From positions 20,336,001 to 20,400,000 of the forward strand of contig JAQFVV010000005.1 in assembly GCA_028023455.1 (NCBI GenBank): a DNA stretch of 64,000 bases, given 5' to 3'. Below are positions 5,590 to 56,556 of the stretch, piece by piece. The notes below the pieces were generated by a model. The model was not told the origin of the DNA. It worked only from the letters and a program-made list of their open reading frames with translations, and ran no database searches. The number at the start of each line of letters is the position of its first letter. The stretch's first letter is position 1. The DNA comes from Epiperipatus broadwayi (lineage: Eukaryota; Animalia; Onychophora). Both the position numbers and the translations under genes were made by a program.

Positions 5590-6480
5590 TAGAAGCCTGT
5601 CCATTAAAGTTTGAAAATTTGCTATCTTAATGTAAACTGAATACTAATTATATGCGTGGGAGATGATAATCTGGACCAACTGATGAATGCTGGTTCAGCA
5701 TGAAATACGTATATTGGAAATTATGTATCTTTTTCACATGTATGTTGTCAAGTGTATCGATTATTTAAGATAGAGTGGATATCTGAAGGAGCTTAAAAGT
5801 CTGTATTCAAGTCCCTTTTAATCAAACATCCTGTAAGCAACTTGATTTTCTTCCATTTCATCAAACTTATGAAGATAAAAATATATAATTCTATGCAAAT
5901 ATATATATGACAACTAGTCTTTATATACATATAAGGGATTTGAACACAGACTTTTAAGCTCCAACAGTTATCCACTTCATCTTATGCAAACGATACACAT
6001 ACCCACATACATGTGAACATTTCATGCTGAAACAACACATCAGTTGGTCAAGATCACCACCACACGCGCACACACACATATATATATATATAATTAGTGC
6101 TCAGTAAATGGGCATATTAAGGTCCTATATGTGAGAAGACAGAGTGAAAAATCAACATCGATCTGACAAAAATATGGGCATCAACAAGAGCTTTGAGCAT
6201 TCCATCCTCAGATTTTCAATGATATGGGTAGCCGAAGCTTAACCATTAAAGTTTGAAGATTTACTATCTTAATATAAATTGAGCACTGATTGTACATATG
6301 TGTGGGAGTTGGTAATCTGGACCAACTGGTGAGTACTTGTTCAGCATGACATATATATACTGAAGATCATTTACTTTTTTCATTTGTATGTGGTCAATTA
6401 TATCAGTTGTATAAGATGGAGTGGATAGCTGTAGGGAGCTTAAAAGTCAGTTCAAATCCATTATAATTACATTTAGTATA
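5590..6480. mobile_element. Family-A cluster: plus copy, inverted partial copy, second plus copy
   Basis: About 5665-5820 and 5932-6070 are inverted copies of each other; 6110-6470 is another copy. Shared landmarks: GCCTGTCCATTAAAGTTTGAA, GATGATAATCTGGACCAA, AAAAGTCTG..TTCAA.TCC. Confidence 0.85.
5676..5717 (+). ncRNA. Type-I minimal hammerhead ribozyme (intact consensus)
   Basis: CCAA-CTGATGA-ATGCTG-GTT-CAGCAT-GAAA-TACGTA-TA-TTGG. Stem I is CCAA/TTGG, stem II is 6 bp, stem III is the palindrome ATACGTAT. Predicted AUA cleavage after 5713. Confidence 0.8.
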
Positions 6481-7411
6481 GACAATATACACGTATTTAA
6501 ATATATATTTGCATCATATATATATATATTTATAGCCCTTTGATAAAGATCATATGATATGATTGAAATGCAGGTAGATGGGAAAATATAAAAAAACAAC
6601 CTAATTTATATTACCATTTATTTAAAGCATTAATGTCAAAAATATTGTTTATTTATACATTCATTACTTTATAATTTAATATGCCCAAAATTGTATGTTT
6701 CAATGGATAAACAAAAGCATTCTATCAGGCTGCTGTTCTTAACTAAAGATTATATTTGGAGTAGGGTTTATAAGTATCCTCAAAAATCATGATAAGGTTC
6801 ATTTTTTGGTTAGGTCTTATTTTAGAGGAAACATGTTATATACATGTCAATTTATCTAAAACATGTTATTGCAATATGTTTTAGAATAATCATTTTTATC
6901 TACTTAATTAATAAATACACATTATCAGTGCTATTTTAAATTTGAAATTAATTATTACATCTTCAAGCAATGATTCTATATTTTTTAATTTTATTCTAAA
7001 AATATAATTAAATGGTTTTATTTCTTGGGGTTTGTAAGGAGTTTGACTGCTAGAAATCACAGAGGTGGATGTGAACTGCTGACTTTAAAGGCTTGCGACA
7101 CTATTATTACATCATGCAGCACATTTCTTTCTTTATCTGACAACAAAATAAAAATATTGAAATAACCTTAGAAGAATATATATTTTGGGCAAATTCTCCT
7201 TTCAACAGCCATTGAATGTTAATTTTCTCATCAATATAAGCAACATCTTTCTTATTTAGAGCTATCAATCTGATCCATTTGATATTTTAATTTGAATTTA
7301 TAATACAACATTATTAAGGGCACTTTTTATTTTTTCCCATCATGTAGCAACCCAAAGAATGAAATAGAAATTGCAATAGATGGTGCTTTAATTAATATTG
7401 ATTAAGTTTAT

Positions 7412-8946
7412 TGGTTGTTTTACAATAGCGTGTTGAAACCGCTGGAGGCCGGGCTCGGTTTGTAAACAAAGATAAATATAATGTTGCCGGGGCCGAGTTT
7501 CTTTTCTTTTTTTTTTTTTTGTTTGGCTTTGGTTTTTTGATTTTTTTTTGTTTATCACATTTATAAAAGAAATATCAAATCAAATTTTTTGTTTAAACAT
7601 GACCAAAACAAAAATAAACAAATGCATAAACAAAAAAATTACAAGTAAATGAATTTACAAAAAAAAAGTACTTCATTTTTTTGGCTTTTGATTCTTTTTT
7701 TTTTTATTATTTATAATTTCAAAGGGGACGGGTTTTTTTTTTTTACCGTCTACGTATTTTTTTTTTTTGGTTGTTGTTGTTTAATCACATTTAAAATAAA
7801 AGTACGGCAGCTATCAAATCTATTTTGGCTACCCCAAACAACAACAACAACAAAAAAAACCAAAACCAAAAAAAAAAAAACGGATCGATTAAAACCAATG
7901 ATTTTTAAAAAGTAGTTAACCGATTTTTTGTTTGTTTTGATTTAATTCTCATTAAACCCTTTTCTATTTTCGGTTCGGTATTGTATGACAAACAAAAAAT
8001 CAGCCGATTCAACTACTTCTTCTTTCTTTTTTTCGGTTTGTTTTGTTTTTATTTTGATAAATAAATCTATTGTCCGTTTAACGGTAACATTTACAAGCCA
8101 AAGTCCAACTTTGGGAGAGGGGGAAAGGGAAGGGTGTTTGCAATTGCTAACAGAACGAAACGCCAACAACTCGAAGATTGACCAAGTTTTGACAGTAATT
8201 CCCCCTCAAAAAACATCAATCTATACGGCAATTAAAAGAAACTTTTTGGGCTCTTCAGGCAAAAAAAAACTAAAAAAAAAAAACACAGCAGGCATGCAGC
8301 TTCAAGGTGTTTTGTTTGATAAACCACTGCCGGTTCCAGCAGTCAGAGAAGAATCCTTGTTCTTTCTTTGACATTCGGCAAAACAAGTTGTCCTATTTTT
8401 TACAGCTATTCGATTAATCAGCTCGCAGTTGTTGTCGCACGAAACGTGACTTAGAGCGTGATTTGATGGAAAGCGCGCTTTGAACTACACTTGGTCCATT
8501 TTTTCAGCAGGAAATGGGGGCTAGGGAAGCATGAGACTCTGCTGATAATTGTTAGTAGACCTTCCTAAAAGATGCGAGATAGAGGGGGAGGTGATCTTAA
8601 TGAATATTAAAATAGTTTTGACAATCGTAATTCCAGCCACCCTCAGACAATATTGTAAACAAAAGTGAAATATGATCGCTAGTCCGAAATGCTTAGCCTG
8701 AATCTGAGCCGTAAGCTGACATGATAGCTTCTGTGGCAAGATTGGCTAAATGTTCACATTTACTGTGCATTGGCATAGAAATAAACACAGTCAGCTGGTG
8801 CCCTCCCCCCGTATTAAACGGACTATTTCTAGGCTTACGCGTTAGAAATAGAACTTTCGATAGCGGCGGAGGCGGCCACCTAAACGGCATATTTGCATAG
8901 AAATAATGCCCTCCGGTGGTTTCCACACGCTATTGTAAAACAACCA
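7412..8946. mobile_element. Non-autonomous TIR DNA element with TGGTTG termini and 6-bp TSD (superfamily unassigned)
   Basis: 39-bp TIRs, 35/39 identical with the first 22 perfect (TGGTTGTTTTACAATAGCGTGT). GTTTAT duplicated at 7406-7411 and 8947-8952. CpG-rich interior; no recognisable transposase. Confidence 0.85.
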
Positions 8947-9063
8947 GTTTATTTCATAACTCCATTTTATGCTTTAATGAACCAATGCCACTACATTAAA
9001 AATTCAAACTTTAACACCAAATGCATCAGATTGGTGATATTCAAGTAGGAAAGGATTTCTTAC

Positions 9064-15715: not shown

Positions 15716-15822
15716 TGACAGCATTGGTGGTTGAGAGGTTACCATAGCTGCCTTAAAAGCAGTTGTCCTGGGTTAGCGGGGTTCACTTCCTGGCCGATGC
15801 TATGACACATGAGAAAAAAAAA
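15716..15822 (+). mobile_element. tRNA-Gly-derived SINE, copy 3
   Basis: GCATTGGTGGTTGAGAGGTTACCATAGCTGCCTTAAAAGCAGTTG...GGGTTCACTTCCTGGCCGATGCTATGACAC plus an A tail. Confidence 0.85.
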
Positions 15823-25029: not shown

Positions 25030-26559
25030 ATGAGTAACATTATGGAGACTGATAAAAATTTCAGTCTATCAGCCAACACAGCACAAGCCCCAAGTAACAC
25101 ATATGCTACAATTGCAAAAAAATATAACGTTAACGCAAGCCCTAGTGCTAACGTAAATCAGGAGTAGACCCCACAGATTCAGAAGAACTACAGCGGAAGA
25201 TTTAAAGAATCTAAACATATCAGAACAAGATCAAACATTACCTCCCCCACTCACAGTATGGACAGATGAAATGCTAGAAACAATTGGAGAACAATTTAAC
25301 AACACGATACCTCGGACACTCTTTACAACATTTAAAAGATTCTTCACGGACAACTCAGTAGTGTTAGCAGTAACAGACAATCACTGCTCACTATATACTT
25401 TCCCTAAGCCACTTCTACTTGAAGCACTAGAAAAAAATAAAATTATCGACTCAGTCAGTTGTATAGCTGACCATCCGAATAATAGATATGTGGCACTAGA
25501 ATTCAAAAGCTCCGAACAAATAGAACAGTTTAAAAAAAAATTAAAACAATTGGAAATTTTGCAATAATACAAGTTGACCAAAATAAATATAAAAATATAA
25601 CTGGAGTTATCAAAAATACCTACTTTGGGTACAATCTAGATGACTTTCAAAGGATGATGAACCCTTTTGGAAAAGTAACATTTTTCCAACAAACCTATAT
25701 CAAAGAAGCAGCAATCCCAATATTATCAAACAGTTATGAATACAAAGTCAAATTACACAAAGACATAGAACCAGAAAATATCCCAACACATATCACAGAC
25801 CAAGAAGCCACACTTCATCTGTATATAAGAGGCCTCAAACCAAGATGTTTTGCATGTGGAAAAAGAGGACACATAGCGACTGTTTGTAAGGAAAAAAATC
25901 AAGAAAAAAAAGACCAAAGTAATTCCAATTTAGTAGAAACAACTACAGTAAACACAGATAATAACACACAACCGCCAAATTCACACCTTCAAAAACTCAA
26001 CTTAAACAAAGCTAATACAACAACAGAGAAAAATAAAAATGTAAACACTTCTACATCTGTAAACACAGAACAAATAATTGAAATGAAAAAAAAAGAAAAT
26101 GAAGACTCACAGTCTAATGGAAAAAAACCCAAAGATGACACAACAAAAACAATAGAAAATAAAACAGATATCTCTGGCCAAGATAAACACAGAATTCTAA
26201 ACAAGACAGCTACTGAAATCATGGATAAAATTGCAGAAAGTCTTCCAGCAATTGAAAATATAACAAAAGAAAGCAAAAGAAAACAGCAAAAGGAAACAAA
26301 AAAGAGAGAAATTAAAAAAATCAAACCTAATGCAAAAGAACTCCAACCAGCAGAAACGAAAATGCAAGAAAAAGAAAAGAATATAGAAATGGAAACAGAT
26401 GATGAACGACTAACTGATTCAGAATATGACAGTGAAAGTGATCATTTAAAACACGGGCATATAAACACAGACACATACAACCCACAAGCAACACCAGTTT
26501 TAAAAACCAAAAGTACAGACACAGAGACAATACCAACAACAACTAAAAAAATAAAATAG
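25030..26559 (+). pseudogene. ORF1 (gag-like, CCHC zinc knuckle), frameshifted; ~510 aa when reconstructed
   Basis: Three open segments: 25030-25164, 25157-25567 and 25534-26559. CFACGKRGHIATVC knuckle followed by a K/E/T-rich tail. Frame breaks near 25160 and in the A9 run at 25532-25540. Confidence 0.85.
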
Positions 26560-26603
26560 TCAACACATCTCAAAGCAAAAAAATCTATAAATCAAAAACC
26601 AGT

Positions 26604-29600
26604 ATGATTATAAAGGTAGCTGCACTTAATGTAAGGGGTATAAACTCCAAGACAAAAATACAGAATATAAACAAATGGATACAAATCATACAACCAAGCA
26701 TCTTGGGGCTCCTTGAAACTAAAATACATAGTGGATCAAAAATTGACCCAGCACAAGTCATGAGCACACAAGGTTTTTGTGCATGCTCAAGAGACTCATC
26801 TGCACCAGCCAGTGGGACAGGAATATACATAAGCCGGAGTTGTCCCTTCACTACTTTCAAAATAATCTACATAGACTCAAACCTAATAATTACAACTTTT
26901 TACCACAAAAATCTCTCAATCAATATCATATATGTATATATTCCACCAGGGCCAATTATAATCAATAGAATAATTGCAACAATAAACTCAATGCTGGCAA
27001 ACAATCCTTACCCAACAATACTAACAGGGGATTTTAATATGAGCTACCAAAAGTTTGTTAATAAGTGGATTCACCAATTAGCAATACCACTTATGAGTGG
27101 AGAAGGATTCCTACCACCAAACTCCATATCCTTTTATAACAGCAGATATGGAACTCTGATAGACCTGATGTTCTATTCCCCAATGCTGCATCAAGCAATA
27201 GAAATGAGTCTATCCCCCACACATTTCTCAGATCATGCAGTGCAAATAATAAAAATAAATCTAGATACAAACTATAACCAAAAATACTACCTACAGAAAA
27301 CCATAAGAATTCTACTGCCAATCAATACACAGGAAGTTTTTTTCTCAGAAATATATATAGCAATAAACAAACTAAATCAAATGGACCTTGACCCAATAAC
27401 AAAATATATAGCTTTCACAGAAACCATATCTTATAATATCAATCAAATGACACAAAAAACAACCCCACCAACAAAACTCATAACATTGGCAGAAGAAATA
27501 CATAAAAAGATCATAACAGCAAAACCAATCAAAAATAACCAAGAAATCATTGTTAAACTTACACAACTATACAATCAAACATGTAACCAATTAAAACAAT
27601 ATATTGCCATCAAAAAGAAAAAAATATGTTTAACAGAACAACACACTTGGACCCGTGGTTACATTAGGTGGGCATTAGGATATCCCTCAACTAACAAAGT
27701 ACCTATGGCAATTAAAACAGGAAATAAAGTGATAACAGGCTATAACATGATAGAACCCATCTTTCAATACTTCAGAAGTAAACTCACAACAAACAACCAA
27801 TGGAAGATCCCAGAAAATTACTTTGGAAAACCTGAAAATGAAAACCCCTATAAAATAGAAGATTTTGCAAGAATACTCACAACATTACAAAGCACTTGTC
27901 ACCCAGGACCACCCGGGATCCCAAAATTTGTACTAACTCATCTAAGTCAATTTACAAACAAATTATTATGTCAACTAGCAAATCAACTTTCACAAAAATT
28001 ATATAACATACAAGGTCTAATCCCAATATCAATGGTCCCTTTCATGAAAAAAATAGAATCCATCTCGGAAATTACAAATTTAAGACCCATTTCAATGGAG
28101 CCATTAGGAATCAAAATTTTAGAAAAAGTACTAAAAGAAAAGATAGAGCCCTACATCTTACCAATAATATCGGAACATCAATATGCTAAAAAAGGGTCAT
28201 CAACAGGCCAAGCAGCTCTAATTTTTAAAACAATAGTAAATTCAACAATAAAAAGAAAAAAACATGGGCCCATGGTAGTACAATTGGATTTTGAGAGTGC
28301 CTTTGACTCTGTCCCCATCAACAAACTAATCAATCAATTAAAAAAAACAAAAATACCAAGAACAATCTTATACACAATAGCCAACCTACTCCTAAATAGG
28401 GAGATACACATTACGCTAAATGGAAGAACATCACCCACTTTCCATCCTAACCAATCCATCCCCCAGGGATCTCCACTAAGTACACTACTCTTCACACTAT
28501 ACATAAACCCTCTACTTGAAAAAATCAAGGAAAAATTACAAGGAATACAAATAAAAAACACCAATATTTACATACCCTGTATAGCCTACATGGATGATGG
28601 TACGGTTTTTTTACCTTCAAAGAAACATCTACATACACTCCAAAAAATAATAGAAGACTATACAACAAAATTTCATCTGAAAATAAATACTAATAAATCA
28701 GCTGTGTGGTCAATTTTTACTGGGAAAACCAACACACAAATATACCAAGGAAAACCGAATAAGTTTCTGGGTTTCCCATTTCATTTGGGAATGGGGCAGA
28801 TGAGAAGAACAATACAAGACAAAATTTTAACACAAACAGAAAGAATCACAGACTCACTTGCTAAATCATACCTTTCTCTATACTCAAAGGTTGCTCTCTT
28901 CAACCAACTGATAATGACAAAAATCACATACTACCTACCAGTGATAAAGTTTACCAAAAAATTTATATCAACAGTAAACTCCATGTGCAATAAACTACTT
29001 TGGAATAAAAAGGTGGTAGCAATTTCAATGAGGCAAATAAGCCAACCCACAAAACTAAATGGGCTTGGACTACATACAATTTCAACTTTTTACACACAAA
29101 AAATAATAAACCTGCTGATTACAACATTTACAAAGTTTCCAAATATTCAAAAAATAATAGATATAATACCCACTGACCGACCACCTCCCAAAGACAACTA
29201 TATAGCCACACTTTTAGACAGCATAAGAAATCAAAGGGACAAAATAACCCTGTCTAACCCAATTAAATACACATATTGGCACATACATAGCCTAATAGAG
29301 CAGACACAACAAGATATCAACAACAAAATGGTCCTTGAAATAAACAATGCACAGCTCCTAAAAAAATATAAAAATTGGTACCTGGAGCCTAAATTCTTTG
29401 ACTTCATAGTCAAAGTAAATCTGAATGCCTTGCCTACATCACATTTCATCCATTTTAAAAGGTTCTTTACGAAAATAGACCCACTGTGCAGATTGTGCCA
29501 AAGAGAAGAAGAAACACAACATCATTTTCTAAACGATTGTCTGGGCTTGGAAAAGGTAAGACAAATAATGATAAATAACTACCATCAGAAAGACACAACA

Positions 29601-29840
29601 ATGGCAAAAATTCTCCAGGTATACAAAAAAAATGCAATCCCAACAATAAGAGCAGCAACATTTAGCTTGTATGCATATTGGTACACCAGATGTAAATTCA
29701 ATTTTGACTACAATGCAAAACAAAACCTCAACACTTTCCACCACAAGCTAGAAAAAATAAAAGAAAGGGATAACATGCTAGCACCACCAGATATTTTTGC
29801 TGCAACTTGGTCACTGTTTAAACTAAAATCAGCACTATAG
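26604..29840 (+). CDS. ORF2: apurinic-like endonuclease + reverse transcriptase + C-terminal CCHC zinc finger (1078 aa, intact)
   Basis: APE motifs ALNVRG, LLETK, GDFN, IDLMF, SDH. RT motifs NLRPIS, LDFESAFDSV, PQGSPLS, YMDD. Zinc finger CRLC..EETQHHFLNDC. Confidence 0.97.
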   Translation: MIIKVAALNVRGINSKTKIQNINKWIQIIQPSILGLLETKIHSGSKIDPAQVMSTQGFCACSRDSSAPASGTGIYISRSCPFTTFKIIYIDSNLIITTFYHKNLSINIIYVYIPPGPIIINRIIATINSMLANNPYPTILTGDFNMSYQKFVNKWIHQLAIPLMSGEGFLPPNSISFYNSRYGTLIDLMFYSPMLHQAIEMSLSPTHFSDHAVQIIKINLDTNYNQKYYLQKTIRILLPINTQEVFFSEIYIAINKLNQMDLDPITKYIAFTETISYNINQMTQKTTPPTKLITLAEEIHKKIITAKPIKNNQEIIVKLTQLYNQTCNQLKQYIAIKKKKICLTEQHTWTRGYIRWALGYPSTNKVPMAIKTGNKVITGYNMIEPIFQYFRSKLTTNNQWKIPENYFGKPENENPYKIEDFARILTTLQSTCHPGPPGIPKFVLTHLSQFTNKLLCQLANQLSQKLYNIQGLIPISMVPFMKKIESISEITNLRPISMEPLGIKILEKVLKEKIEPYILPIISEHQYAKKGSSTGQAALIFKTIVNSTIKRKKHGPMVVQLDFESAFDSVPINKLINQLKKTKIPRTILYTIANLLLNREIHITLNGRTSPTFHPNQSIPQGSPLSTLLFTLYINPLLEKIKEKLQGIQIKNTNIYIPCIAYMDDGTVFLPSKKHLHTLQKIIEDYTTKFHLKINTNKSAVWSIFTGKTNTQIYQGKPNKFLGFPFHLGMGQMRRTIQDKILTQTERITDSLAKSYLSLYSKVALFNQLIMTKITYYLPVIKFTKKFISTVNSMCNKLLWNKKVVAISMRQISQPTKLNGLGLHTISTFYTQKIINLLITTFTKFPNIQKIIDIIPTDRPPPKDNYIATLLDSIRNQRDKITLSNPIKYTYWHIHSLIEQTQQDINNKMVLEINNAQLLKKYKNWYLEPKFFDFIVKVNLNALPTSHFIHFKRFFTKIDPLCRLCQREEETQHHFLNDCLGLEKVRQIMINNYHQKDTTMAKILQVYKKNAIPTIRAATFSLYAYWYTRCKFNFDYNAKQNLNTFHHKLEKIKERDNMLAPPDIFAATWSLFKLKSAL

Positions 29841-31789: not shown

Positions 31790-34375
31790 AAAAATCAGAG
31801 TTAGTAAAAGTGGAAAAGAAAGGAAAAAAGCATGCAGAGAATATAAGTGTTCTATTAAGAACAAAGAGAGTGAAAAAGATATTAATGCTAAATGGGAAAA
31901 GTACTTAGAAAAGAAGAAGTTAGCTAAAATAGATAATTATAAAGAGAGGAATTGAATAGGAAATTGTTGGAGGATATTAATAAAAGTGGAAAAAGATGGG
32001 AGTAAAAAATTTTGGAATTACATTAAAAGAAGAAATGTACAAGGGAAAGAGATAGTATTACTAGATGATGAGGGAATAGAGTGTAGCTCTAGAGAAGAAT
32101 TAGAGAGAATTTTGAATAAATATGTAATGGATATAGAAAAGATGTTAGATGTGAAGGACAAGGGGATAGAAAATATGAAAGCATATACTAATGGAAATAT
32201 TAGGTTTACAGAAAATGAACTGAATGAGGCAGGAATTAAATTGAAAATTGGAAAGGCAAGAGGTTTAGATGGATGGGCAGCAGAGATGGTAATGAATTTA
32301 GGGCATAGGGCAAAAGTAAAGCTATTATCATTGTTTAATAAGATGGCACAGAAGAGAGTTTTTCCGGATAGTTGGAGTAATACAAGAGTAAGATTATTAT
32401 TTAAAGAAAAGGGTAAGGATCATAGAAAGTTAAATAATTATGAACCGATAGCGGTAACATCAGTTTTATATAAAAAAATTTTATATATGGTGGCTGGAAA
32501 AGTTGCAAAATGGATGGAAGAGAATAGTGTAGTGGGGGAAATGCAAGGAGGTTTTAGGTCAGATAGGCATATAGGAGATAGTTTATTTGTAGTTACACAA
32601 CTTATGAATATGAGTTGGAAATCAGGTAGACAGTTACATATGAGTTTTATAGATATAGAGAAGGTATATGATAGAGTAAATAGAAATAGATTATGGGTAA
32701 GTTTAGAAAATTTGGAAATGGATGAAGCCTTAGTGGATATTATTAAGAGATTATAGAGAAGGTATATGATAGAGTAAATAGAAATAGATTATGGGTTAGT
32801 TTAGAAAATTTGGAAATGGATGAAGCCTTAGTGGATATTATTAAGAGATTATATGAAAATAATTATTATGCATATCAATTAGGGGATATAGAATCAGTTA
32901 AACTTAAAAATGGGGTGGGACTAAGGAAAGGATGCCCTATGTTACCTACTTTGTTTTTGTTGTATTTGAGTGAAGTGGAGAGAGCATTAGAAAGACTAGG
33001 AAGAAGGATAGAGATACTGTTAATAAATGGCAAGGGAATATATACTTAGTTGGAACTTTTTTTGCAGATGACCTCTTTTTGTGTGCAGAAAAAAAAGAAG
33101 ATATGGAAGTTATGCTGAGGACATGCACAAGGGTGGGTAAAAAGATGGGGATTAAATTTAGTGAAGAAAAATCGAATATAATGATGGTTAATACTGGGAA
33201 AAGAGAAGACGAAGAATTTTTATTGGGGGATATGAAGTTAAGTGTGGTGAATAGATATAGTTATTTGGGAATCATTTTAAGTAATCAGAAAAATTGCTTG
33301 GATGAATGGGAGAAAAAATTGATAAATGAAGCAAAGAAAAAAAAGGGATTGATAAAGAAATTAACATTATTTTCTTATAATAAATATGATGTAGTTAGAA
33401 TTGTATGGAAGGGAGTTGCAGTAGCAGGGTTAACATATGGCAATGGTGTGTTGTGTGTTAGTAAAGGGGTATTAGATTACTTAAAAAAAGTACAAAGGGA
33501 AGTAGGAAGACATGCATTAGATGCAGATGTCAGGGCAGCAAAGGAGGCAATTCAAGAAGAAATGAGATGGTCATGTTTTTATATGAGAGATGTAGAAAGC
33601 AAAATGAAAATTTTTGGTAGATTGCAGTTTAAGGATAATAAAAGAGTAGCCAAAATAGTATTTAATTGGGTTACGAGTAAAGGGCAAGCAACAAGATGGG
33701 GAGAAAGGTAATGTGGTATGCAGAAAATTTGGATAAAGAATTTATATCAGTATATTTGTGTTAGAAGGATTGTTGAGTGTTATAGTGATAAATAATAGGA
33801 TAGAAGAATAGATGCATTAATAAAGAATAGGAAGTTGGAGAGATGGAGAACTAGTATGGAGAGTAAAAAGAGTTTAAATATATATAGAAGTAAATGGAAC
33901 ATTGTGAGCGAGTTAATTTATGATAATAGTAAGAAAAGTAGTTTATTGTTTAAGGCTCAAATGAGATCTTTAGCAACAAGGGAATACATATGTAAATGGA
34001 AAAATATGGGTGATGTAGTCTGCAAGTTTTGTAAGGAAGGCATAGAAAATATTAGGCATCTGTTAATTCAATGTAAATGCTTGGAAGCAGAAAGGGTACA
34101 AATAATGAAATTTATGGAAGAATAAATATGAACAAAGTGATTATACAGAAAATGGGTTATTGGTTTTTATGCTGGGTTTGGGAAAAGATAAAGGGGGATT
34201 TATATATGAAGGCCTTGGAGTTGACAAAGATTATGTTGTGGAAATGGGATGGAGCAGATTATGGGAAAACAGAGTGGGAAATGGAAGGTAAAATGGTTAA
34301 CAGGTTTCTCTGGGTATAGTTGTTGAGCGATTCCTGGCTCCGTATAAGGGAAAGTCACAGTGCATCACATCACAT
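31790..34375 (+). pseudogene. 5'-truncated, decayed non-LTR retrotransposon ORF2 (RT + C-terminal zinc finger); clade not determined
   Basis: ORF pieces 31986-32756, 32810-33049, 33079-33711 and 33835-34125 carry QGGFR, FIDIEKVYDRV, GLRKGCP, FADD and CKFC..E...H.L..C. (CATCA)n-like tail near 34360; 98-bp internal tandem duplication. Confidence 0.9.
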
Positions 34376-39359: not shown

Positions 39360-40285
39360 TATACTTAAGTTAGATGTAATTAAAGGGGATTTGAACCCAG
39401 ACTTTCAAGCTCTCTTTAGTCATCTATTCTATCATATACAACCAATACACATTACCACATAATTTGTAAAGATAAATAATCTCAAGTACATGTATTTTGT
39501 GCTGAACCAGCACTCATAATTGGTCCACAGCATTATCTCCCACATATAAACATAATCAGTGCTTGATTTATATTAAGATAAAAAAATCTTCAAACTTTAG
39601 TGGACAGGCTTCAATTTTCTCCACTCTTTAACTTTTCAGCCATCCACATCATGAAAATCTGATGATGGCATGTACAAAGCTCTTGTTTGCAATTTTGTTG
39701 TCATACCCATGTTGACTATAAGTCATTCTGACTCCTCATATGTAGGTCCTTAAGACCATTTAATTACACAGAGGAAAGACAGGCAGATTACAGGCTGAAT
39801 CTGAAATATTTTAAATACAAGTATAGTATATAAACTTAAGCTAGATGTAACTAGAAGGGATTTGAACCCAAACTTTCAAGTTCCCTTTAGACATTCATTT
39901 CTCTTACACAACCAATACACATGACCACATAAATGTGAGGGATCAGAATTACTTATGGTCAACATGAGTATGACAACAAAATTGGCGAACAAGGGCTCTG
40001 AACATGCTATTATCAGATTTGCAATGATATGGATGACTGAAGAGTTGGAGAATGGAGAAGATTGAACCCTGCCCGTTAAAATTTGAAGATTTTCTATCTC
40101 AATACAAACTGGGCACTGATTATATATATATATATATATGGGAGATGATGATCCAAACCAATTGATGAGTGCTGGTTCAGCATGGAGTATGTATATTTTA
40201 CATGTGGTCATGTGCATTGGTTGTATAAGATGGAATGGATGACTGAAGAGAAAGTCTGGGTTCAAATCCCCTCTAATTACTTGAT
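39360..40285. mobile_element. Family-A slightly-more-than-monomer followed by an inverted copy
   Basis: Unit start ACTTAAG.TAGATGTAA..A.A.GGGATTTGAACCC at about 39363 and 39835 (~470-bp period). About 39935-40285 is the same family inverted. Degenerate hammerheads at about 39490 (-) and 40155 (+). Confidence 0.8.
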
Positions 40286-44436: not shown

Positions 44437-45094
44437 TGTAATTTTATATTGGACTATTTCCATCATCTAATATGTGTGTTAAATGTCTTTAAAAAGTTTA
44501 ATTTTATTTAAATATTCCAAATGCATTCATCTGTTAGTAATATCACAGCAAACAGGTTAGTATATGCACCAACTGTTAGTAATATCACAGCAAACAGGTT
44601 AGTATATGCACCAACTGTTAGTAATATCACAGCAAACAGCTTAGTATATGCACAATGTTTCAAGAGGTATTTCTCTCCTGTCTTCTTCAGGTGTTGCTGG
44701 CCTGACCAGTGACAGTATTAGCATGGGATTCGAACCTGGGTCTTTAGATTCTTGATTATTGAAATTTTAAGGTAATGCTCTAACCAACTGAGCCATCCTG
44801 CCAAAGGTAACAGTATGTAGTAATTTCATATACAACCTGTTTGCTGTGATATTACTAACAGCTAGAGCATATACTAACCTGTTTGCTGTGATATTACTAA
44901 CAGTTGTTTGCTGTGATATTATTAACGGAGCATATACTATCCTGTTTGCTGTGATATTACTAACAGTTGAATGCATTTGGAATATTTAAATAAAATTAAA
45001 CTTTTCTAAAGACATTCAACACACATATTAGATGATGGAAATAGTCCAATATAAAAATACAGCTAGAACACCATCATCACAAACCTTCAGAAAA
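44437..45094 (-). mobile_element. Family-D tRNA-head + hammerhead-like SINE inside a fold-back, with 10-bp TSD and 42-bp tandem repeats
   Basis: Minus strand: GGCAGGA-TGGCTCAGTTGG (44795-44784)...GGTTCGAATCC (44736-44726)...CTGAAGA (44690-44684)-A-GACAGG-loop-CCTCTT-GAAAC. Inverted arms at about 44440-44650 and 44835-45060. TTGTTACGGT at 44427-44436 and 45095-45104. Three 42-bp repeats from 44531. Confidence 0.8.
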
Positions 45095-47433
45095 TTGTTA
45101 CGGTAATTATTTTTGTTCCAAAGTTGTTTTCATTCATGTGATAATAGTTTTAATTTAACTCTCTCATCACGAATTTTTAAAACCATTTTTGGTCTCAAAA
45201 TGATTTTTTTAACATTCAAAATTATATATATATATATTTACATTCTAGTTATACACTTAAAATTCTAACATTTTTAATACAGATTAAAAAATGTAATATT
45301 TCAATATATATATATCATGAAAATCAGTAAAATTTTGACCTACTAAATTATGTATTTGTACTTAAATCAGTAAAATATTTGATTTAGTAAATTATGGATA
45401 TATAATTGAAATTCTAACACTTTGAAATATTTGTACTTATAAAAGAAATAAATACTATAAAATATTGCAATATTTTAAAATTAAAAAAGAGAGATTTGGA
45501 AAATACTTGCCAAAATTATTTGTACAAGTTTATACTGTTCGTGTGAAATATTTATAAAATCAAACAAAAATATTTTTTACTTACCTATGAAACTATATTA
45601 TAGTGTGCAAGTAAAATTGAAATATATATATATTTTACCAAAAAAAAAAAAGACTTTTGTAAGATAGAACAAATTTTATTTTCAAAAACTGGAAACAAAA
45701 TAGAGGATTTTTTTTACTGTCCACACATGCTAACTAGAAAAAGTGTACAAATTAATATTGTTTCCTAATTGCAGCTGCCACCTAGACAAAATTAATAAAA
45801 AATGAAAGTACTATAAATGTATTAATGAATAAATCTCAAGAACTATGTGACTTATTCAAATATTAGGCAGCTAAAATATCATTTTTTTTATAGACGCAAA
45901 CTGTAAAAACCATAGTTTTCAACAGCATTAATAAAAAAAACAGGGTTTTATTTTTAATAATTATATATTTTTAGAATGATTTAAATTTATATCATGTGAA
46001 GTAAGAAAAAAGTTACATTATTTTGGTTATTAAACATGTATTTAGATATAAATATAACTAAAATATTAAAACAGGCAAAACTCTCCATACAGTAGTGCCA
46101 CCCAGTGCCAACCTGTGCAAGCATAAGAAATGGTGATCATGTGATAAGTAAAATATATTAAATTATTCTAATTAATATAAAAAGATTTGTTTTTATTTCC
46201 TTAAAAAATGTATAGATTTTACAATTTCCCAGTTTTTAGTTAAATTTAAAATTAATTTTAACAATAATTTTAATAGAAAAGTTTTATTTTGTTGCAAACG
46301 TTATTCAAATTGAAGACCATATATGTGAAACATTAAATTTTACAAAGTTAGCCTCCATTTAATAATGTAACTTGGCCACAGAAGGCTTGATGATTTTATA
46401 ATGTGGTGGAATGATAATGATTGAACCCCATCACAAGTTAGTGGTGGTTAGCTCTATAAATATTAATACACTAATGAGCTAAAATATTTTAAAATAAACA
46501 AACATAGATTCAGATTAAAAATATATATTTGTAGATATAATATATACATACACATGATATGTATAATTTATTCAAATGTAATAAAATATATACTTGAAAA
46601 ATTTTATTTTTATGTGCACAAATATTTTCTTCTTTTTTGCATTACAAAGAAAAATTCTGTATATATATTTATCTATCTAGAAAATTTAAAAAAATAAAAA
46701 TTTAGCCATTTTTTAATTTTTATTATCTTGTAAAATTAATTAATTAGAATGAGTAAAATTATCAAAGATGTTTTTTTTATGGCCATATGATATTTCTTTT
46801 GTGAAGAAAAAATAATTTTGTTTTTTTCTCTTATCAAAGCTAGAGAATAGAAAAAAATATATTTTCTTTTTTTTTGTGTGTGTGTGTGTATTGATTAGAT
46901 ATTTTATTTTGTCAATTAATCAAAAAAATTTTCTGAGAATTTAATTAGAAAAAAATAATGATAAGAAAAAGCAGGCTGACAGCAATTTCTTTTCATGTGT
47001 GTCGCTATAAATTAGGTTTTAAAACTAAAGTAGGGAGATTGGTTCTTAGATTGTTATGTAGCAGAGAGAAAATGGCATGTTGCACTGCTGAAAAAAAAAC
47101 TTTGATGAAAAAAGTTAATTGAAGCTTGGTCTTGACATTCCTGGAATTATGGTAAAACTGCCCAATTATATATCATTATGGAATGCCAAAAATTGCTTGC
47201 AGGTAATAAACATCATTATTGAATGTATTATGAATTCTTGCCATGCAAAAATGCTATTTTATAGAATTATTAAAAAAAGCAATATGGAGTAGAACTCATT
47301 TTAATCCATGGACCTTTTTTCCTTGTCAACATGTGAGCCTATACATAATTGTTCTGTACGCAAATGCCTGCCTAATGGAAAAAATGATCCTGTAAAGTAA
47401 ATCTAAATCCTTGTACCTCCTGTTTTACAGTTT

Positions 47434-48758
47434 TGGTTGTGTTCTGATCTATCGTGTCAGCCACTTAATGGCATTGATGCTAAGCAAAAACACATTGATA
47501 TAACATTCCTGGGCCAGCCATTCTTTACAACTATGATATCCATAAAATTAAAAATTAAAAATATATATATATAAATGTAAGCAGACTTTTTGGAACAGTA
47601 ATTAATCAGAGACTGACTTTTTTGTGTGTGTGTGTGTGTGTCGATAAAAAAAGTACATTACTTCCCAATACCAAATAATAATACATTAGAGACTTTTTTG
47701 GACAGTAATTCCAATAAAATTTTACAATGAAAGACAACTTTGACCTTTTTGGGACAGTAATTAATTTGGACAGTAATTAATAAGGGACGGGCTTCTTTTT
47801 TTTTTTTTGTTACTTTGCATATTGGAAAAGTTACAGTACTTTTTAAATACAATATTAAATTACATTTTATCCTTTTTTTTCAGGCAGTAATTAATCAGAC
47901 ACTGTGTTTGGGGGGTAAAATTAAATTATATTGCATGCTTTTTGATGTGTATATATAAAATTACATTACTTTTTTAATAACAAATAATAGTAAATGTAGC
48001 AGAGACTTATTTGGATACTAGTTAATCAGAGACGGGCTTGTTTGGTTTTTTACATTTCGGAAAAGTTATGGTAGTTTTTTAAGAAAAAATTAAATCACAT
48101 TTTATCTTTTTTTAGGACAGTAATTAATCAGACACTGCATTTTTGGAGGTAACTAAATTCGATTGCAATTTACCAAATAAGGTTATTAATAATAATAACA
48201 AACTATTATAATGAAATCTGACTCCGGTGTCTGGCAAGTGGCAATTTTGAGAGTTGGAAGCAGCCATCTTCCCTGTCTCGGACGATTTCTCGCGATACGT
48301 TACTTACATCATGATTTTCAAAATAGTGCTGTGCCCCACCTTAAAATCCAATTTGTAATGCTAACACAGTCCTGATGGAACAGTTACAACACTGTTAAAA
48401 GTGTTAGAAGGTACCAGTAGGTCAGTTCACATGAAACAAAAAAAGGTTGATATGAAAAGTTAAATTATTTAGACATGATGCAGTCAACACACCGTCACCC
48501 AATACTATAGTGAAAATATACAACCCAGCATTACGATAACAACCAACTATGGCAGCTAATAAAGGCATTTTTCTGTGCTTTTAGCATAGAAAAGAAGCAA
48601 CAGTGGTAGTCGGCAGCTAAGTAAACTGACTCTTTCTGTGTTTTATCATAGAAAGAAAGCTATCTGCTTGGCTGTGGCTGTGAAAACCGCATATTTGTAG
48701 CAATTTAGCTAAAAATAGTGCCATCAAGAAGCTGACATGATAGATCAGAACACAACCA
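47434..48758. mobile_element. Second non-autonomous TIR element with TGGTTG termini and 6-bp TSD
   Basis: 40-bp TIRs, 36/40 identical (TGGTTGTGTTCTGATCTATC…). Flanks CAGTTT (47428-47433) and TAGTTT (48759-48764). About 7 internal GGACAGTAATT(AATCAGA) motifs and a ~230-bp tandem duplication. Confidence 0.8.
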
Positions 48759-49139
48759 TAGTTTTACACATGAAGAGTATGCTGAAAGTTTTGAATTGTG
48801 AGTTAATTTTTTTTTTAAAAGATAAAAAAGGATAAAAAAATCAACAAATGAAAACATTTTCTTATTAGAACCATTGAAGAGAACTCTAGATATTTCTTTA
48901 TTTTATTTAAATTTATAAAGCAATACATATGAATGTGTTTGCATGTATATGGGATAATATAATTTTATGTTAAACCTACCAAATTTATAACCATAATTTT
49001 TTTTTTGTATATGCAGTTGATAATTAAATGAAATGCTAATTATTTTATTTTGCATAGTAATATTTAATCTTTAAAAGTCAATATTATTATAATTATTTGT
49101 TAATTTATGATAATATATTTATGTGTATATAACCACATA

Positions 49140-49889: not shown

Positions 49890-50385
49890 TTATATAGGGG
49901 CTTTGAACTCAGACTTTCATATAACCCTCAACTATCCATGCTATCTCAGACTGCTGACACACTTGATCATATTGAAAAGATAAATAATCACCAATATACA
50001 TACTTTATGCTAAACCAGCAATCGTCAATTGGACCAGATTATCATCTCCACACATATATACAGTCAATGCTCAGCTTATATTAAGAGTTGTGGGGTGGGG
50101 TGGATTGAAGCCTGTACATTAAATTATGAAGATTGGCTATCTTAATACAAGCTGAGCATTGATTGTATATATGTACAGAGATGATAATTTGGACCAACGA
50201 CAAGTGCTAGTTTAGCAAGAAATATGTATATTAGTGATTTATTTATCTTTTCAACACATGTGTGATCAAGTGTGTCAACAGTATGAGATAGCATGGATAG
50301 TTGAGGGTCATGTAAAAGTCTGAGATCAAACCCCTATTTTTACATATTGGAGTGCAGTATGAAAAAGCCTGTACTTTAGAAAAAA
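49890..50385. mobile_element. Family-A fold-back (arms ~190 bp)
   Basis: About 49893-50086 and 50138-50337 are inverted copies, each with a degenerate hammerhead. Confidence 0.85.
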
Positions 50386-55885: not shown

Positions 55886-56556
55886 AATATTTGAAATACA
55901 GGCATTCTTCATATACCTGCAATTTAAGTGTAAATATAGGGATTTGAACTCAGACTTTCAAGCATCCTTCAACTATCCACACTATCTCATACCACTGATA
56001 CGCATGACCACACACATGTAGAAAAGATAAATAATCACCAATATATGTATTTCGTGCTAAACCAGCACTCATCAAATGGTCCAGATTATCATCTCCCCCC
56101 CACATATATATATATATAATCAGTGCTCAGTTTATATTAAGATAGAAAATCTTCATACTTAATGGAAAGGCTTCAATCTACTCCAACCTCCAACTTCTCA
56201 GACATCCATACAATTGAAAATCTGATAATGGCAAGACAAATCCCATGCTGATGCCAATATTATTGCCATGCCCATGTTGACCTCAAGTTACTCTGACCCC
56301 CATGTATAGGGCCTTATCCATTTAAATGCATAGAAAGAGGGATGGGCAGGATACAGGCTTAATGTGTAAATATTTGAAATACAGACATTCTTAATATACC
56401 AGGGACAATTAAGTTCCAGGTATATGAAGAATGTCTGTATTTTAAATATTTGCACATTATCTTTTCTACATGTGTGTGGTCATGTGTTTCAGTGGTATGA
56501 GATAGTGTGGATAGTTGAAGGGTGCTTGAAAGTCTGAGTTCAAATCCCCTATATTT
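55886..56556. mobile_element. Family-A monomer (483-bp period) + inverted partial copy, 12-bp TSD
   Basis: ACTAAATATAAA at 55874-55885 and 56557-56568. Unit start repeated at about 55888 and 56371; inversion at ~56410. Minus-strand hammerhead TTGATGA-GTGCT-GGTTT-AGCAC-GAAA-TACATA-TA-TTGG (56076-56038). Confidence 0.85.

Follow-up and report, generated by a model that had tools for sequence, protein, structure and literature searches.

Two related non-autonomous inverted-repeat transposons with Merlin-like ends in an onychophoran genomic window

Two transposons with one tip and one junction geometry

The window analysed here, a 64,000-nucleotide stretch of Epiperipatus broadwayi DNA, is A/T-rich, repeat-filled eukaryotic sequence with 29.6% GC. 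It carries two segments of 1535 and 1325 bp, each bounded by terminal inverted repeats (TIRs) and flanked by a short direct repeat of the kind left as a target site duplication (TSD). The features of the first segment, element 1, are as follows.

7405-7412, no strand: left TSD copy, AGTTTATT (8 bp), or GTTTAT at 7406-7411 (6 bp)
7412-8946, + strand: element 1, non-autonomous TIR transposon, 1535 bp when read as TGGTTG...CAACCA
7412-7448, + strand: left TIR, identical to the right arm at 34 of 37 positions, with TAGCG at positions 14-18 from the GG tip
7498-7880, + strand: T/A-rich internal block of degenerate direct repeats with a spacing of ~230 bp
8687-8909, + strand: right subterminal region, homologous to that of element 2, with two same-strand CATAGAAA sites (8774-8781 and 8896-8903)
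8910-8946, - strand: right TIR, likewise with TAGCG at positions 14-18
8946-8953, no strand: right TSD copy, AGTTTATT (8 bp), or GTTTAT at 8947-8952 (6 bp)

When its ends are instead taken as GG...CC, the same element runs from 7413 to 8945 and measures 1533 bp. An earlier sequence-only reading of this DNA had described a transposon with TGGTTG at 7412 and CAACCA ending at 8946, exact GTTTAT duplications and no transposase, and each of these points held on re-examination: the boundaries and the length of 1535 bp are as described, GTTTAT is present at both ends, and no open reading frame (ORF) of element 1 has a Pfam match, leaving it without coding capacity. Its figure of 39 bp for the TIRs has to be revised, as the arms are 37 nt long and agree at 34 of 37 positions (92%), with complete identity over the first 22 nt; these 22 bases, TGGTTGTTTTACAATAGCGTGT, recur as an exact reverse complement at the other end. 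The 21-nt tip occurs at only two places in the window, namely the two ends of the element itself, against none expected in 100 shuffles, and a chance inverted repeat was ruled out on this count.

A 39-nt inverted repeat pair (82% identity) at 7266-7304 and 8995-9033 brackets element 1, and therefore the site that received it may itself be a small foldback or MITE-like element of ~225 bp; this putative host element has no second copy within the window.

The second segment, element 2, represents another, related non-autonomous family.

47427-47434, no strand: left TSD copy, ACAGTTTT (8 bp), or CAGTTT at 47428-47433 (6 bp)
47434-48758, + strand: element 2, 1325 bp, or 47435-48757 when read as GG...CC
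47434-47473, + strand: left TIR, identical to the right arm at 36 of 40 positions, with TATCG at positions 16-20 from the GG tip
47580-48160, + strand: internal degenerate tandem repeats of ~235-245 bp, with a 173-nt self match at 75%
48499-48718, + strand: right subterminal region with two same-strand CATAGAAA sites (48585-48592 and 48647-48654)
48719-48758, - strand: right TIR, with TATCA at the motif position, a CpG-to-CpA type of difference from the left arm
48758-48765, no strand: right TSD copy, ATAGTTTT (8 bp), or TAGTTT at 48759-48764 (6 bp), with one mismatch to the left copy

Element 2 was previously said to follow the same rule as element 1. That description stands for the tip, the inverted arms and the junction geometry, and needs qualification for the duplication, which is imperfect at 5/6 positions (CAGTTT and TAGTTT) or 7/8 positions (ACAGTTTT and ATAGTTTT). 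The flanks of element 2 show additional similarity beyond this repeat because the target is a tandem pair of GTTTTACA. No ORF of element 2 matches a protein family, and this element likewise has no coding capacity. With inverted ends, flanking repeats and no coding capacity, both segments are non-autonomous TIR (class II) transposons, as the sequence-only reading had held.

Kinship and age of the two elements

The two elements have the 7-nt tip TGGTTGT in common, and several short blocks are conserved when their right subterminal regions are aligned. They also share two short subterminal stretches of 13-16 nt. Within these regions, each right end carries two same-strand copies of CATAGAAA at less than ~175 nt from the right tip, one of which lies 166-167 nt from the tip in each element. 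Four of the 12 occurrences of this motif in the window fall within these 360 bases, where ~0.03 would be expected, and none occurs in the left end of either element. The overall architecture also agrees, in that a block of degenerate direct repeats, 230-245 bp in length, lies in the left half and the right half is unique sequence. We read the elements as related to each other, representing two diverged non-autonomous families that would be served by related enzymes.

The window is depleted of CpG to a vertebrate-like degree, with an observed/expected ratio (O/E) of 0.28 and an excess of TG and CA. Against this background element 1 looks young, because it has kept 49 CpGs (O/E 1.02), whereas element 2, with an O/E of 0.47 and one mismatch in its TSD, looks older. 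These values suggest that element 1 is a recent arrival and that the host genome is heavily CpG-methylated.

Searches for further copies and for a transposase

Comparing both elements and their flanks with the window by blastn, we found no extra copy, no solo end and no paralogous empty site. A scan of all GGTTGT sites in the window yielded no further ends, and a general search of the window for TIRs with flanking duplications recovered nothing else bordered by a repeat of 6 or 8 bp. The sequence-only reading had proposed a search of the genome for TGGTTG-type copies; carried out within the window, this search gave neither a further copy of that type nor a solo end. Pfam comparison of the 135 stop-to-stop ORFs in the window with a length of 55 aa or more identified no transposase family, the matches being to reverse-transcriptase families only.

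Beyond the window, the metagenome, viral and prokaryote genome contigs that were scanned contained no exact match to the 21-nt tip of element 1 or to the 20-nt tip of element 2, and the tip sequences had only chance matches in full-text papers and in the supplements of the published Merlin survey. Because neither a transposase nor a further copy was recovered, the superfamily assignment developed below is drawn from the features of the ends.

The junctions accommodate a 6-bp or an 8-bp duplication

The earlier description of element 1 as flanked by a 6-bp TSD proved correct in that the GTTTAT flanks match exactly, and incomplete in that the full direct repeat is 8 nt long, AGTTTATT, matching at 8/8 positions. 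The same letters can therefore be read in two formally equivalent ways, either as a 6-bp TSD around TGG...CCA ends or as an 8-bp TSD around GG...CC ends. Under the second reading, the direct repeats that lie immediately against GG...CC match at 8/8 positions in element 1 and at 7/8 in element 2, and the 6-bp repeats, which match at 6/6 and 5/6 positions, sit inside these longer ones.

The copies in the window accommodate the two readings equally, because both imply an identical A-N6-T target. Each reading requires the same coincidence in both copies, with a probability of ~0.35^4 = 0.015 if there is no target preference. Since the sequence before insertion is identical under the two models, empty sites of these two copies would agree with either, and it is copies with other flanking bases that can decide the length of the TSD. 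When the base outside a duplication equals the terminal base of the element, single copies are compatible with more than one TSD length and, through it, with more than one superfamily; the main value of the present case is the caution that it advises at such ambiguous junctions.

End features point to Merlin

Merlin is a superfamily of eukaryotic relatives of bacterial IS1016/IS1595. Its elements are diagnosed by TSDs of 8-9 bp, TIRs 24-462 bp long and a conserved 5'-GG at the tip (PMC8101967). Both elements have GGTTG...CAACC termini when the 8-bp reading is taken, and their arms of 37 nt (34/37) and 40 nt (36/40) fall inside this TIR range. The 8-bp, A/T-rich duplications would then be of Merlin type as well, although in these two copies an 8-bp TSD is inseparable from a 6-bp one.

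We compared the ends with published 5' termini from 13 Merlin families (Monocercomonoides, seven; Symbiodinium, three; Euglena, two; Porphyridium, one), taken from the alignments in the survey supplement, where the TSD is followed by the element. Every one of these families starts with GG followed by a pyrimidine (C or T), as do elements 1 and 2, which start with GGT. Nine of the 13, comprising all of the Monocercomonoides and Euglena families, have a TA-(T/G/A)-(N)-(C/G)G core, in which N is optional, with TA at positions 14-16 from the tip. A core of this type is also present in our elements. Both arms of element 1 have TAGCG at positions 14-18 from the GG tip, and the TATCG of the element 2 left arm (positions 16-20) has the same letters at the same position as in Monocercomonoides families F1 and F2, so that a TA(T/G)CG core starts at positions 14-16 in three of the four arms. 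At the 1586 other GGY sites of the window the core is found at a rate of 0.13% under a strict definition and 1.5% under a broad one, and the corresponding rates in random sequence of 35% GC are 0.5% and 2.9%.

The core motif was defined post hoc, after the elements had been seen and from protist families only; the families that bear it come from two organisms, seven of them from one species, and the four other published families are without it. We therefore treat it as moderate support for a Merlin affiliation, and as distinct from a recognised defining feature of the superfamily. Apart from the tip and the core, the TIRs of the two elements are unlike the published Merlin ends to which they were compared.

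The target sites are in keeping with a Merlin affiliation. Published Merlin TSDs (n=32) are A/T-rich, with A as the first base in 16/32 and T as the last in 12/32, and often consist of a run of A followed by a run of T (for example aacatttt and acattttc), a pattern that AGTTTATT and ACAGTTTT fit. Among the canonical Merlin entries of Repbase many are non-autonomous; TIR length varies from 20 to 1000 bp, internal tandem repeats are frequent, and animals with A/T-rich genomes, Hydra and Schmidtea among them, have numerous Merlin families. The internal repeats of elements 1 and 2 have counterparts among known non-autonomous Merlin derivatives.

Judging from these end features, we consider it moderately likely that elements 1 and 2 each belong to a non-autonomous Merlin family, the two families being related. 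The sequence-only reading had concluded that element 1 fits no superfamily, a conclusion that the literature does not bear out under either length of the TSD: an 8-bp duplication next to GG is the Merlin diagnosis (PMC8101967), and a 6-bp duplication with TG...CA ends falls within the range of GingerRoot and IS3EU (PMC6839031, PMC10045372). Because its ends fit Merlin at least as well as they fit an unclassifiable 6-bp type, element 1 is most likely an ordinary transposon. The integrase-type enzyme previously proposed for it also loses ground, since it had been derived from the TG...CA reading, while the TIR evidence points to Merlin and hence to a non-integrase, IS1595/IS1016-like DDE enzyme.

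The elements are probably mobilised in trans by a DDE transposase that binds the inverted ends, with a staggered cut of the target and subsequent gap repair producing the duplication. If the elements are Merlin derivatives, an IS1595/IS1016-like transposase encoded elsewhere in the genome would recognise the inverted ends of ~37-40 nt, and perhaps also the asymmetric repeats of the right subterminal regions. The excised element would then enter an A/T-rich target that is cut with an 8-bp stagger, and repair of the gaps would yield the 8-bp duplications AGTTTATT and ACAGTTTT. A Merlin assignment, if true, would add two more non-autonomous families to a known and widespread superfamily, a result that is unsurprising in itself and helpful for annotation.

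Alternative superfamilies

Taken with a 6-bp TSD (GTTTAT in element 1, CAGTTT/TAGTTT in element 2) and TG...CA ends, the elements could instead be non-autonomous members of IS3EU/GingerRoot, whose DDE enzyme is integrase-related; we regard this as unlikely. What speaks for such an origin is that TGGTTG...CAACCA is indeed flanked by repeats of 6/6 and 5/6, that GingerRoot elements have 6-bp TSDs and show TG...CA ends in 5/77 intact Selaginella copies (PMC6839031), and that fungal IS3EU families combine 6-bp TSDs with TIRs longer than 30 bp, as the two elements would. A review describes Ginger-type elements as ending in TG...CA, with TIRs 40-270 bp long and duplications of 4-6 bp. However, TG...CA is a minority form: IS3EU entries in Repbase "always" have TA..TA (PMC10045372), GingerRoot has TA..TA in 72/77 copies, and the tips of our elements lack these dominant termini. 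Nor does TGGTT match TAYGG, the tip of fungal IS3EU elements. The TIRs of GingerRoot are 100-150 bp long and its targets GC-rich, whereas the two elements have TIRs of 37-40 nt and targets of 17-33% GC, and neither AGTTTATT nor ACAGTTTT fits the GingerRoot preference. The IS3EU/GingerRoot enzyme is rve-like, and no such gene was seen in the ORFs of the elements. An IS3EU/GingerRoot origin would, finally, leave the Merlin-like GGY tip and TA(T/G)CG core unexplained.

It is also improbable that the elements belong to another superfamily with 8-bp TSDs (hAT, Mutator-like, P, Zisupton or Novosib) or to hAT6, whose TSDs are of 6 bp. Asymmetric subterminal short repeats are common in hAT elements, and the short repeats near the right ends of elements 1 and 2 resemble them. 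The usual hAT tip is YARNG and the usual hAT target pattern nTnnnnAn; these commonly given patterns disagree with tips of GGTTG or TGGTTG and with AGTTTATT and ACAGTTTT, in which position 2 is not T and position 7 is not A. The length of the duplication would suit several of these superfamilies, as 8-bp TSDs are typical of hAT, groups of hAT with 5-, 6- and 7-bp TSDs exist, and Mutator-like elements (MULEs) have TSDs of 7-12 bp according to a review. The TIRs suit them less well. Those of hAT are given in the same review as 5-27 bp, shorter than the 37-40 nt found here, and those of MULEs as usually much longer, so that the arms of our elements are short for that family.

Quite unlikely, in our view, is the proposal that an undescribed superfamily, an integrase-type lineage with TG...CA ends and 6-bp TSDs, gave rise to the elements. 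Consistent with it, the tips had no match in the metagenome, viral and prokaryote collections and only chance matches in full-text papers, the autonomous partner has been neither retrieved nor classified, and the TGG tip differs from both the TA..TA of IS3EU and the TGTNR of Ginger. Absence from these collections says little, however, as they contain almost no sequence near this host, to judge from the relatives of a LINE in the same window, which reach at most 37% identity among the matches listed, and Merlin fully accounts for the end features. We think it very unlikely that the TSDs are truly of 6 bp with TG...CA ends and that the partner falls outside IS3EU/GingerRoot, Ginger, Polinton and hAT6, the combination that would amount to a new superfamily. 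Were 6-bp TSDs found genome-wide together with an unclassifiable partner, the elements would represent two diverged non-autonomous families of a new eukaryotic cut-and-paste superfamily, of integrase type or of some other.

Ginger1 and Ginger2, which have TGTNR tips, TSDs of 4 (or 5) bp and CCGG/CCGT or RTATAY targets (PMC2836005), share TG...CA-type ends with our elements under the 6-bp reading and were ruled out by the TGGTT tip and the 6- or 8-bp duplications (GTTTAT/AGTTTATT and CAGTTT/ACAGTTTT); IS481EU, with TNT/TGT tips and TSDs of about 4, 15 or 25 bp, was ruled out as well.

Other repeats of the window

The LINE mentioned above, at 25654-29840, is an apparently intact non-LTR retrotransposon with an A-rich + strand. 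Its ORF1 encodes 301 aa with a weak CCHC zinc knuckle, and its ORF2 encodes 1078 aa with matches to endonuclease and reverse-transcriptase families and a weak match to zf-RVT. Searched against 1.8 billion protein representatives, ORF2 showed 22-37% identity among the 150 matches listed, most of them at 22-30%, the two best lying on eukaryote chromosomes; an exact look-up gave no record, and a word search gave no match at the strict threshold of E<=1e-20.

A sharply bounded block of ~2.5 kb at 31800-34300 has a + strand with 6% C and 25% G, corresponding to a GC skew of ~+0.63. It contains pieces of reverse-transcriptase ORFs and is unrelated to the nearby intact LINE, both at the DNA level and by tblastx, and within it lies a tandem duplication of a 98-bp unit (two copies, 99% identity) at 32654-32853. 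The skew could reflect a family-specific bias in composition or strand-specific C-to-T editing.

Also abundant is a repeat family whose 3' part is tRNA-like (with a T-arm-like GGTTCAAATCCC) and which often occurs as inverted pairs that form long foldbacks, for example at 55939/56548, where the arms measure 92 nt. This family probably represents a tRNA-derived SINE or a foldback family. Two predicted tRNAs are also present, which could be either genes or the heads of tRNA-derived repeats. These features and the tandem arrays of the window are located as follows.

2204 onward, 5788-5962, 39374-40282, 39847-40280, 49892-50313 and 55939-56548: tRNA-like repeat family
15720-15802: predicted tRNA-Leu(TAA), reaching the Rfam tRNA gathering score
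53674-53746: predicted tRNA-Gly(TCC), below the Rfam tRNA gathering score
3023-3604: tandem array, 307-bp unit, 1.9 copies (87%)
44531-44969: tandem array, 42-bp unit, 2.9 copies (98%), adjoining its own inverted copy

The 42-bp array belongs to a large palindromic repeat cluster that extends over 44.4-45.1 kb of the window.
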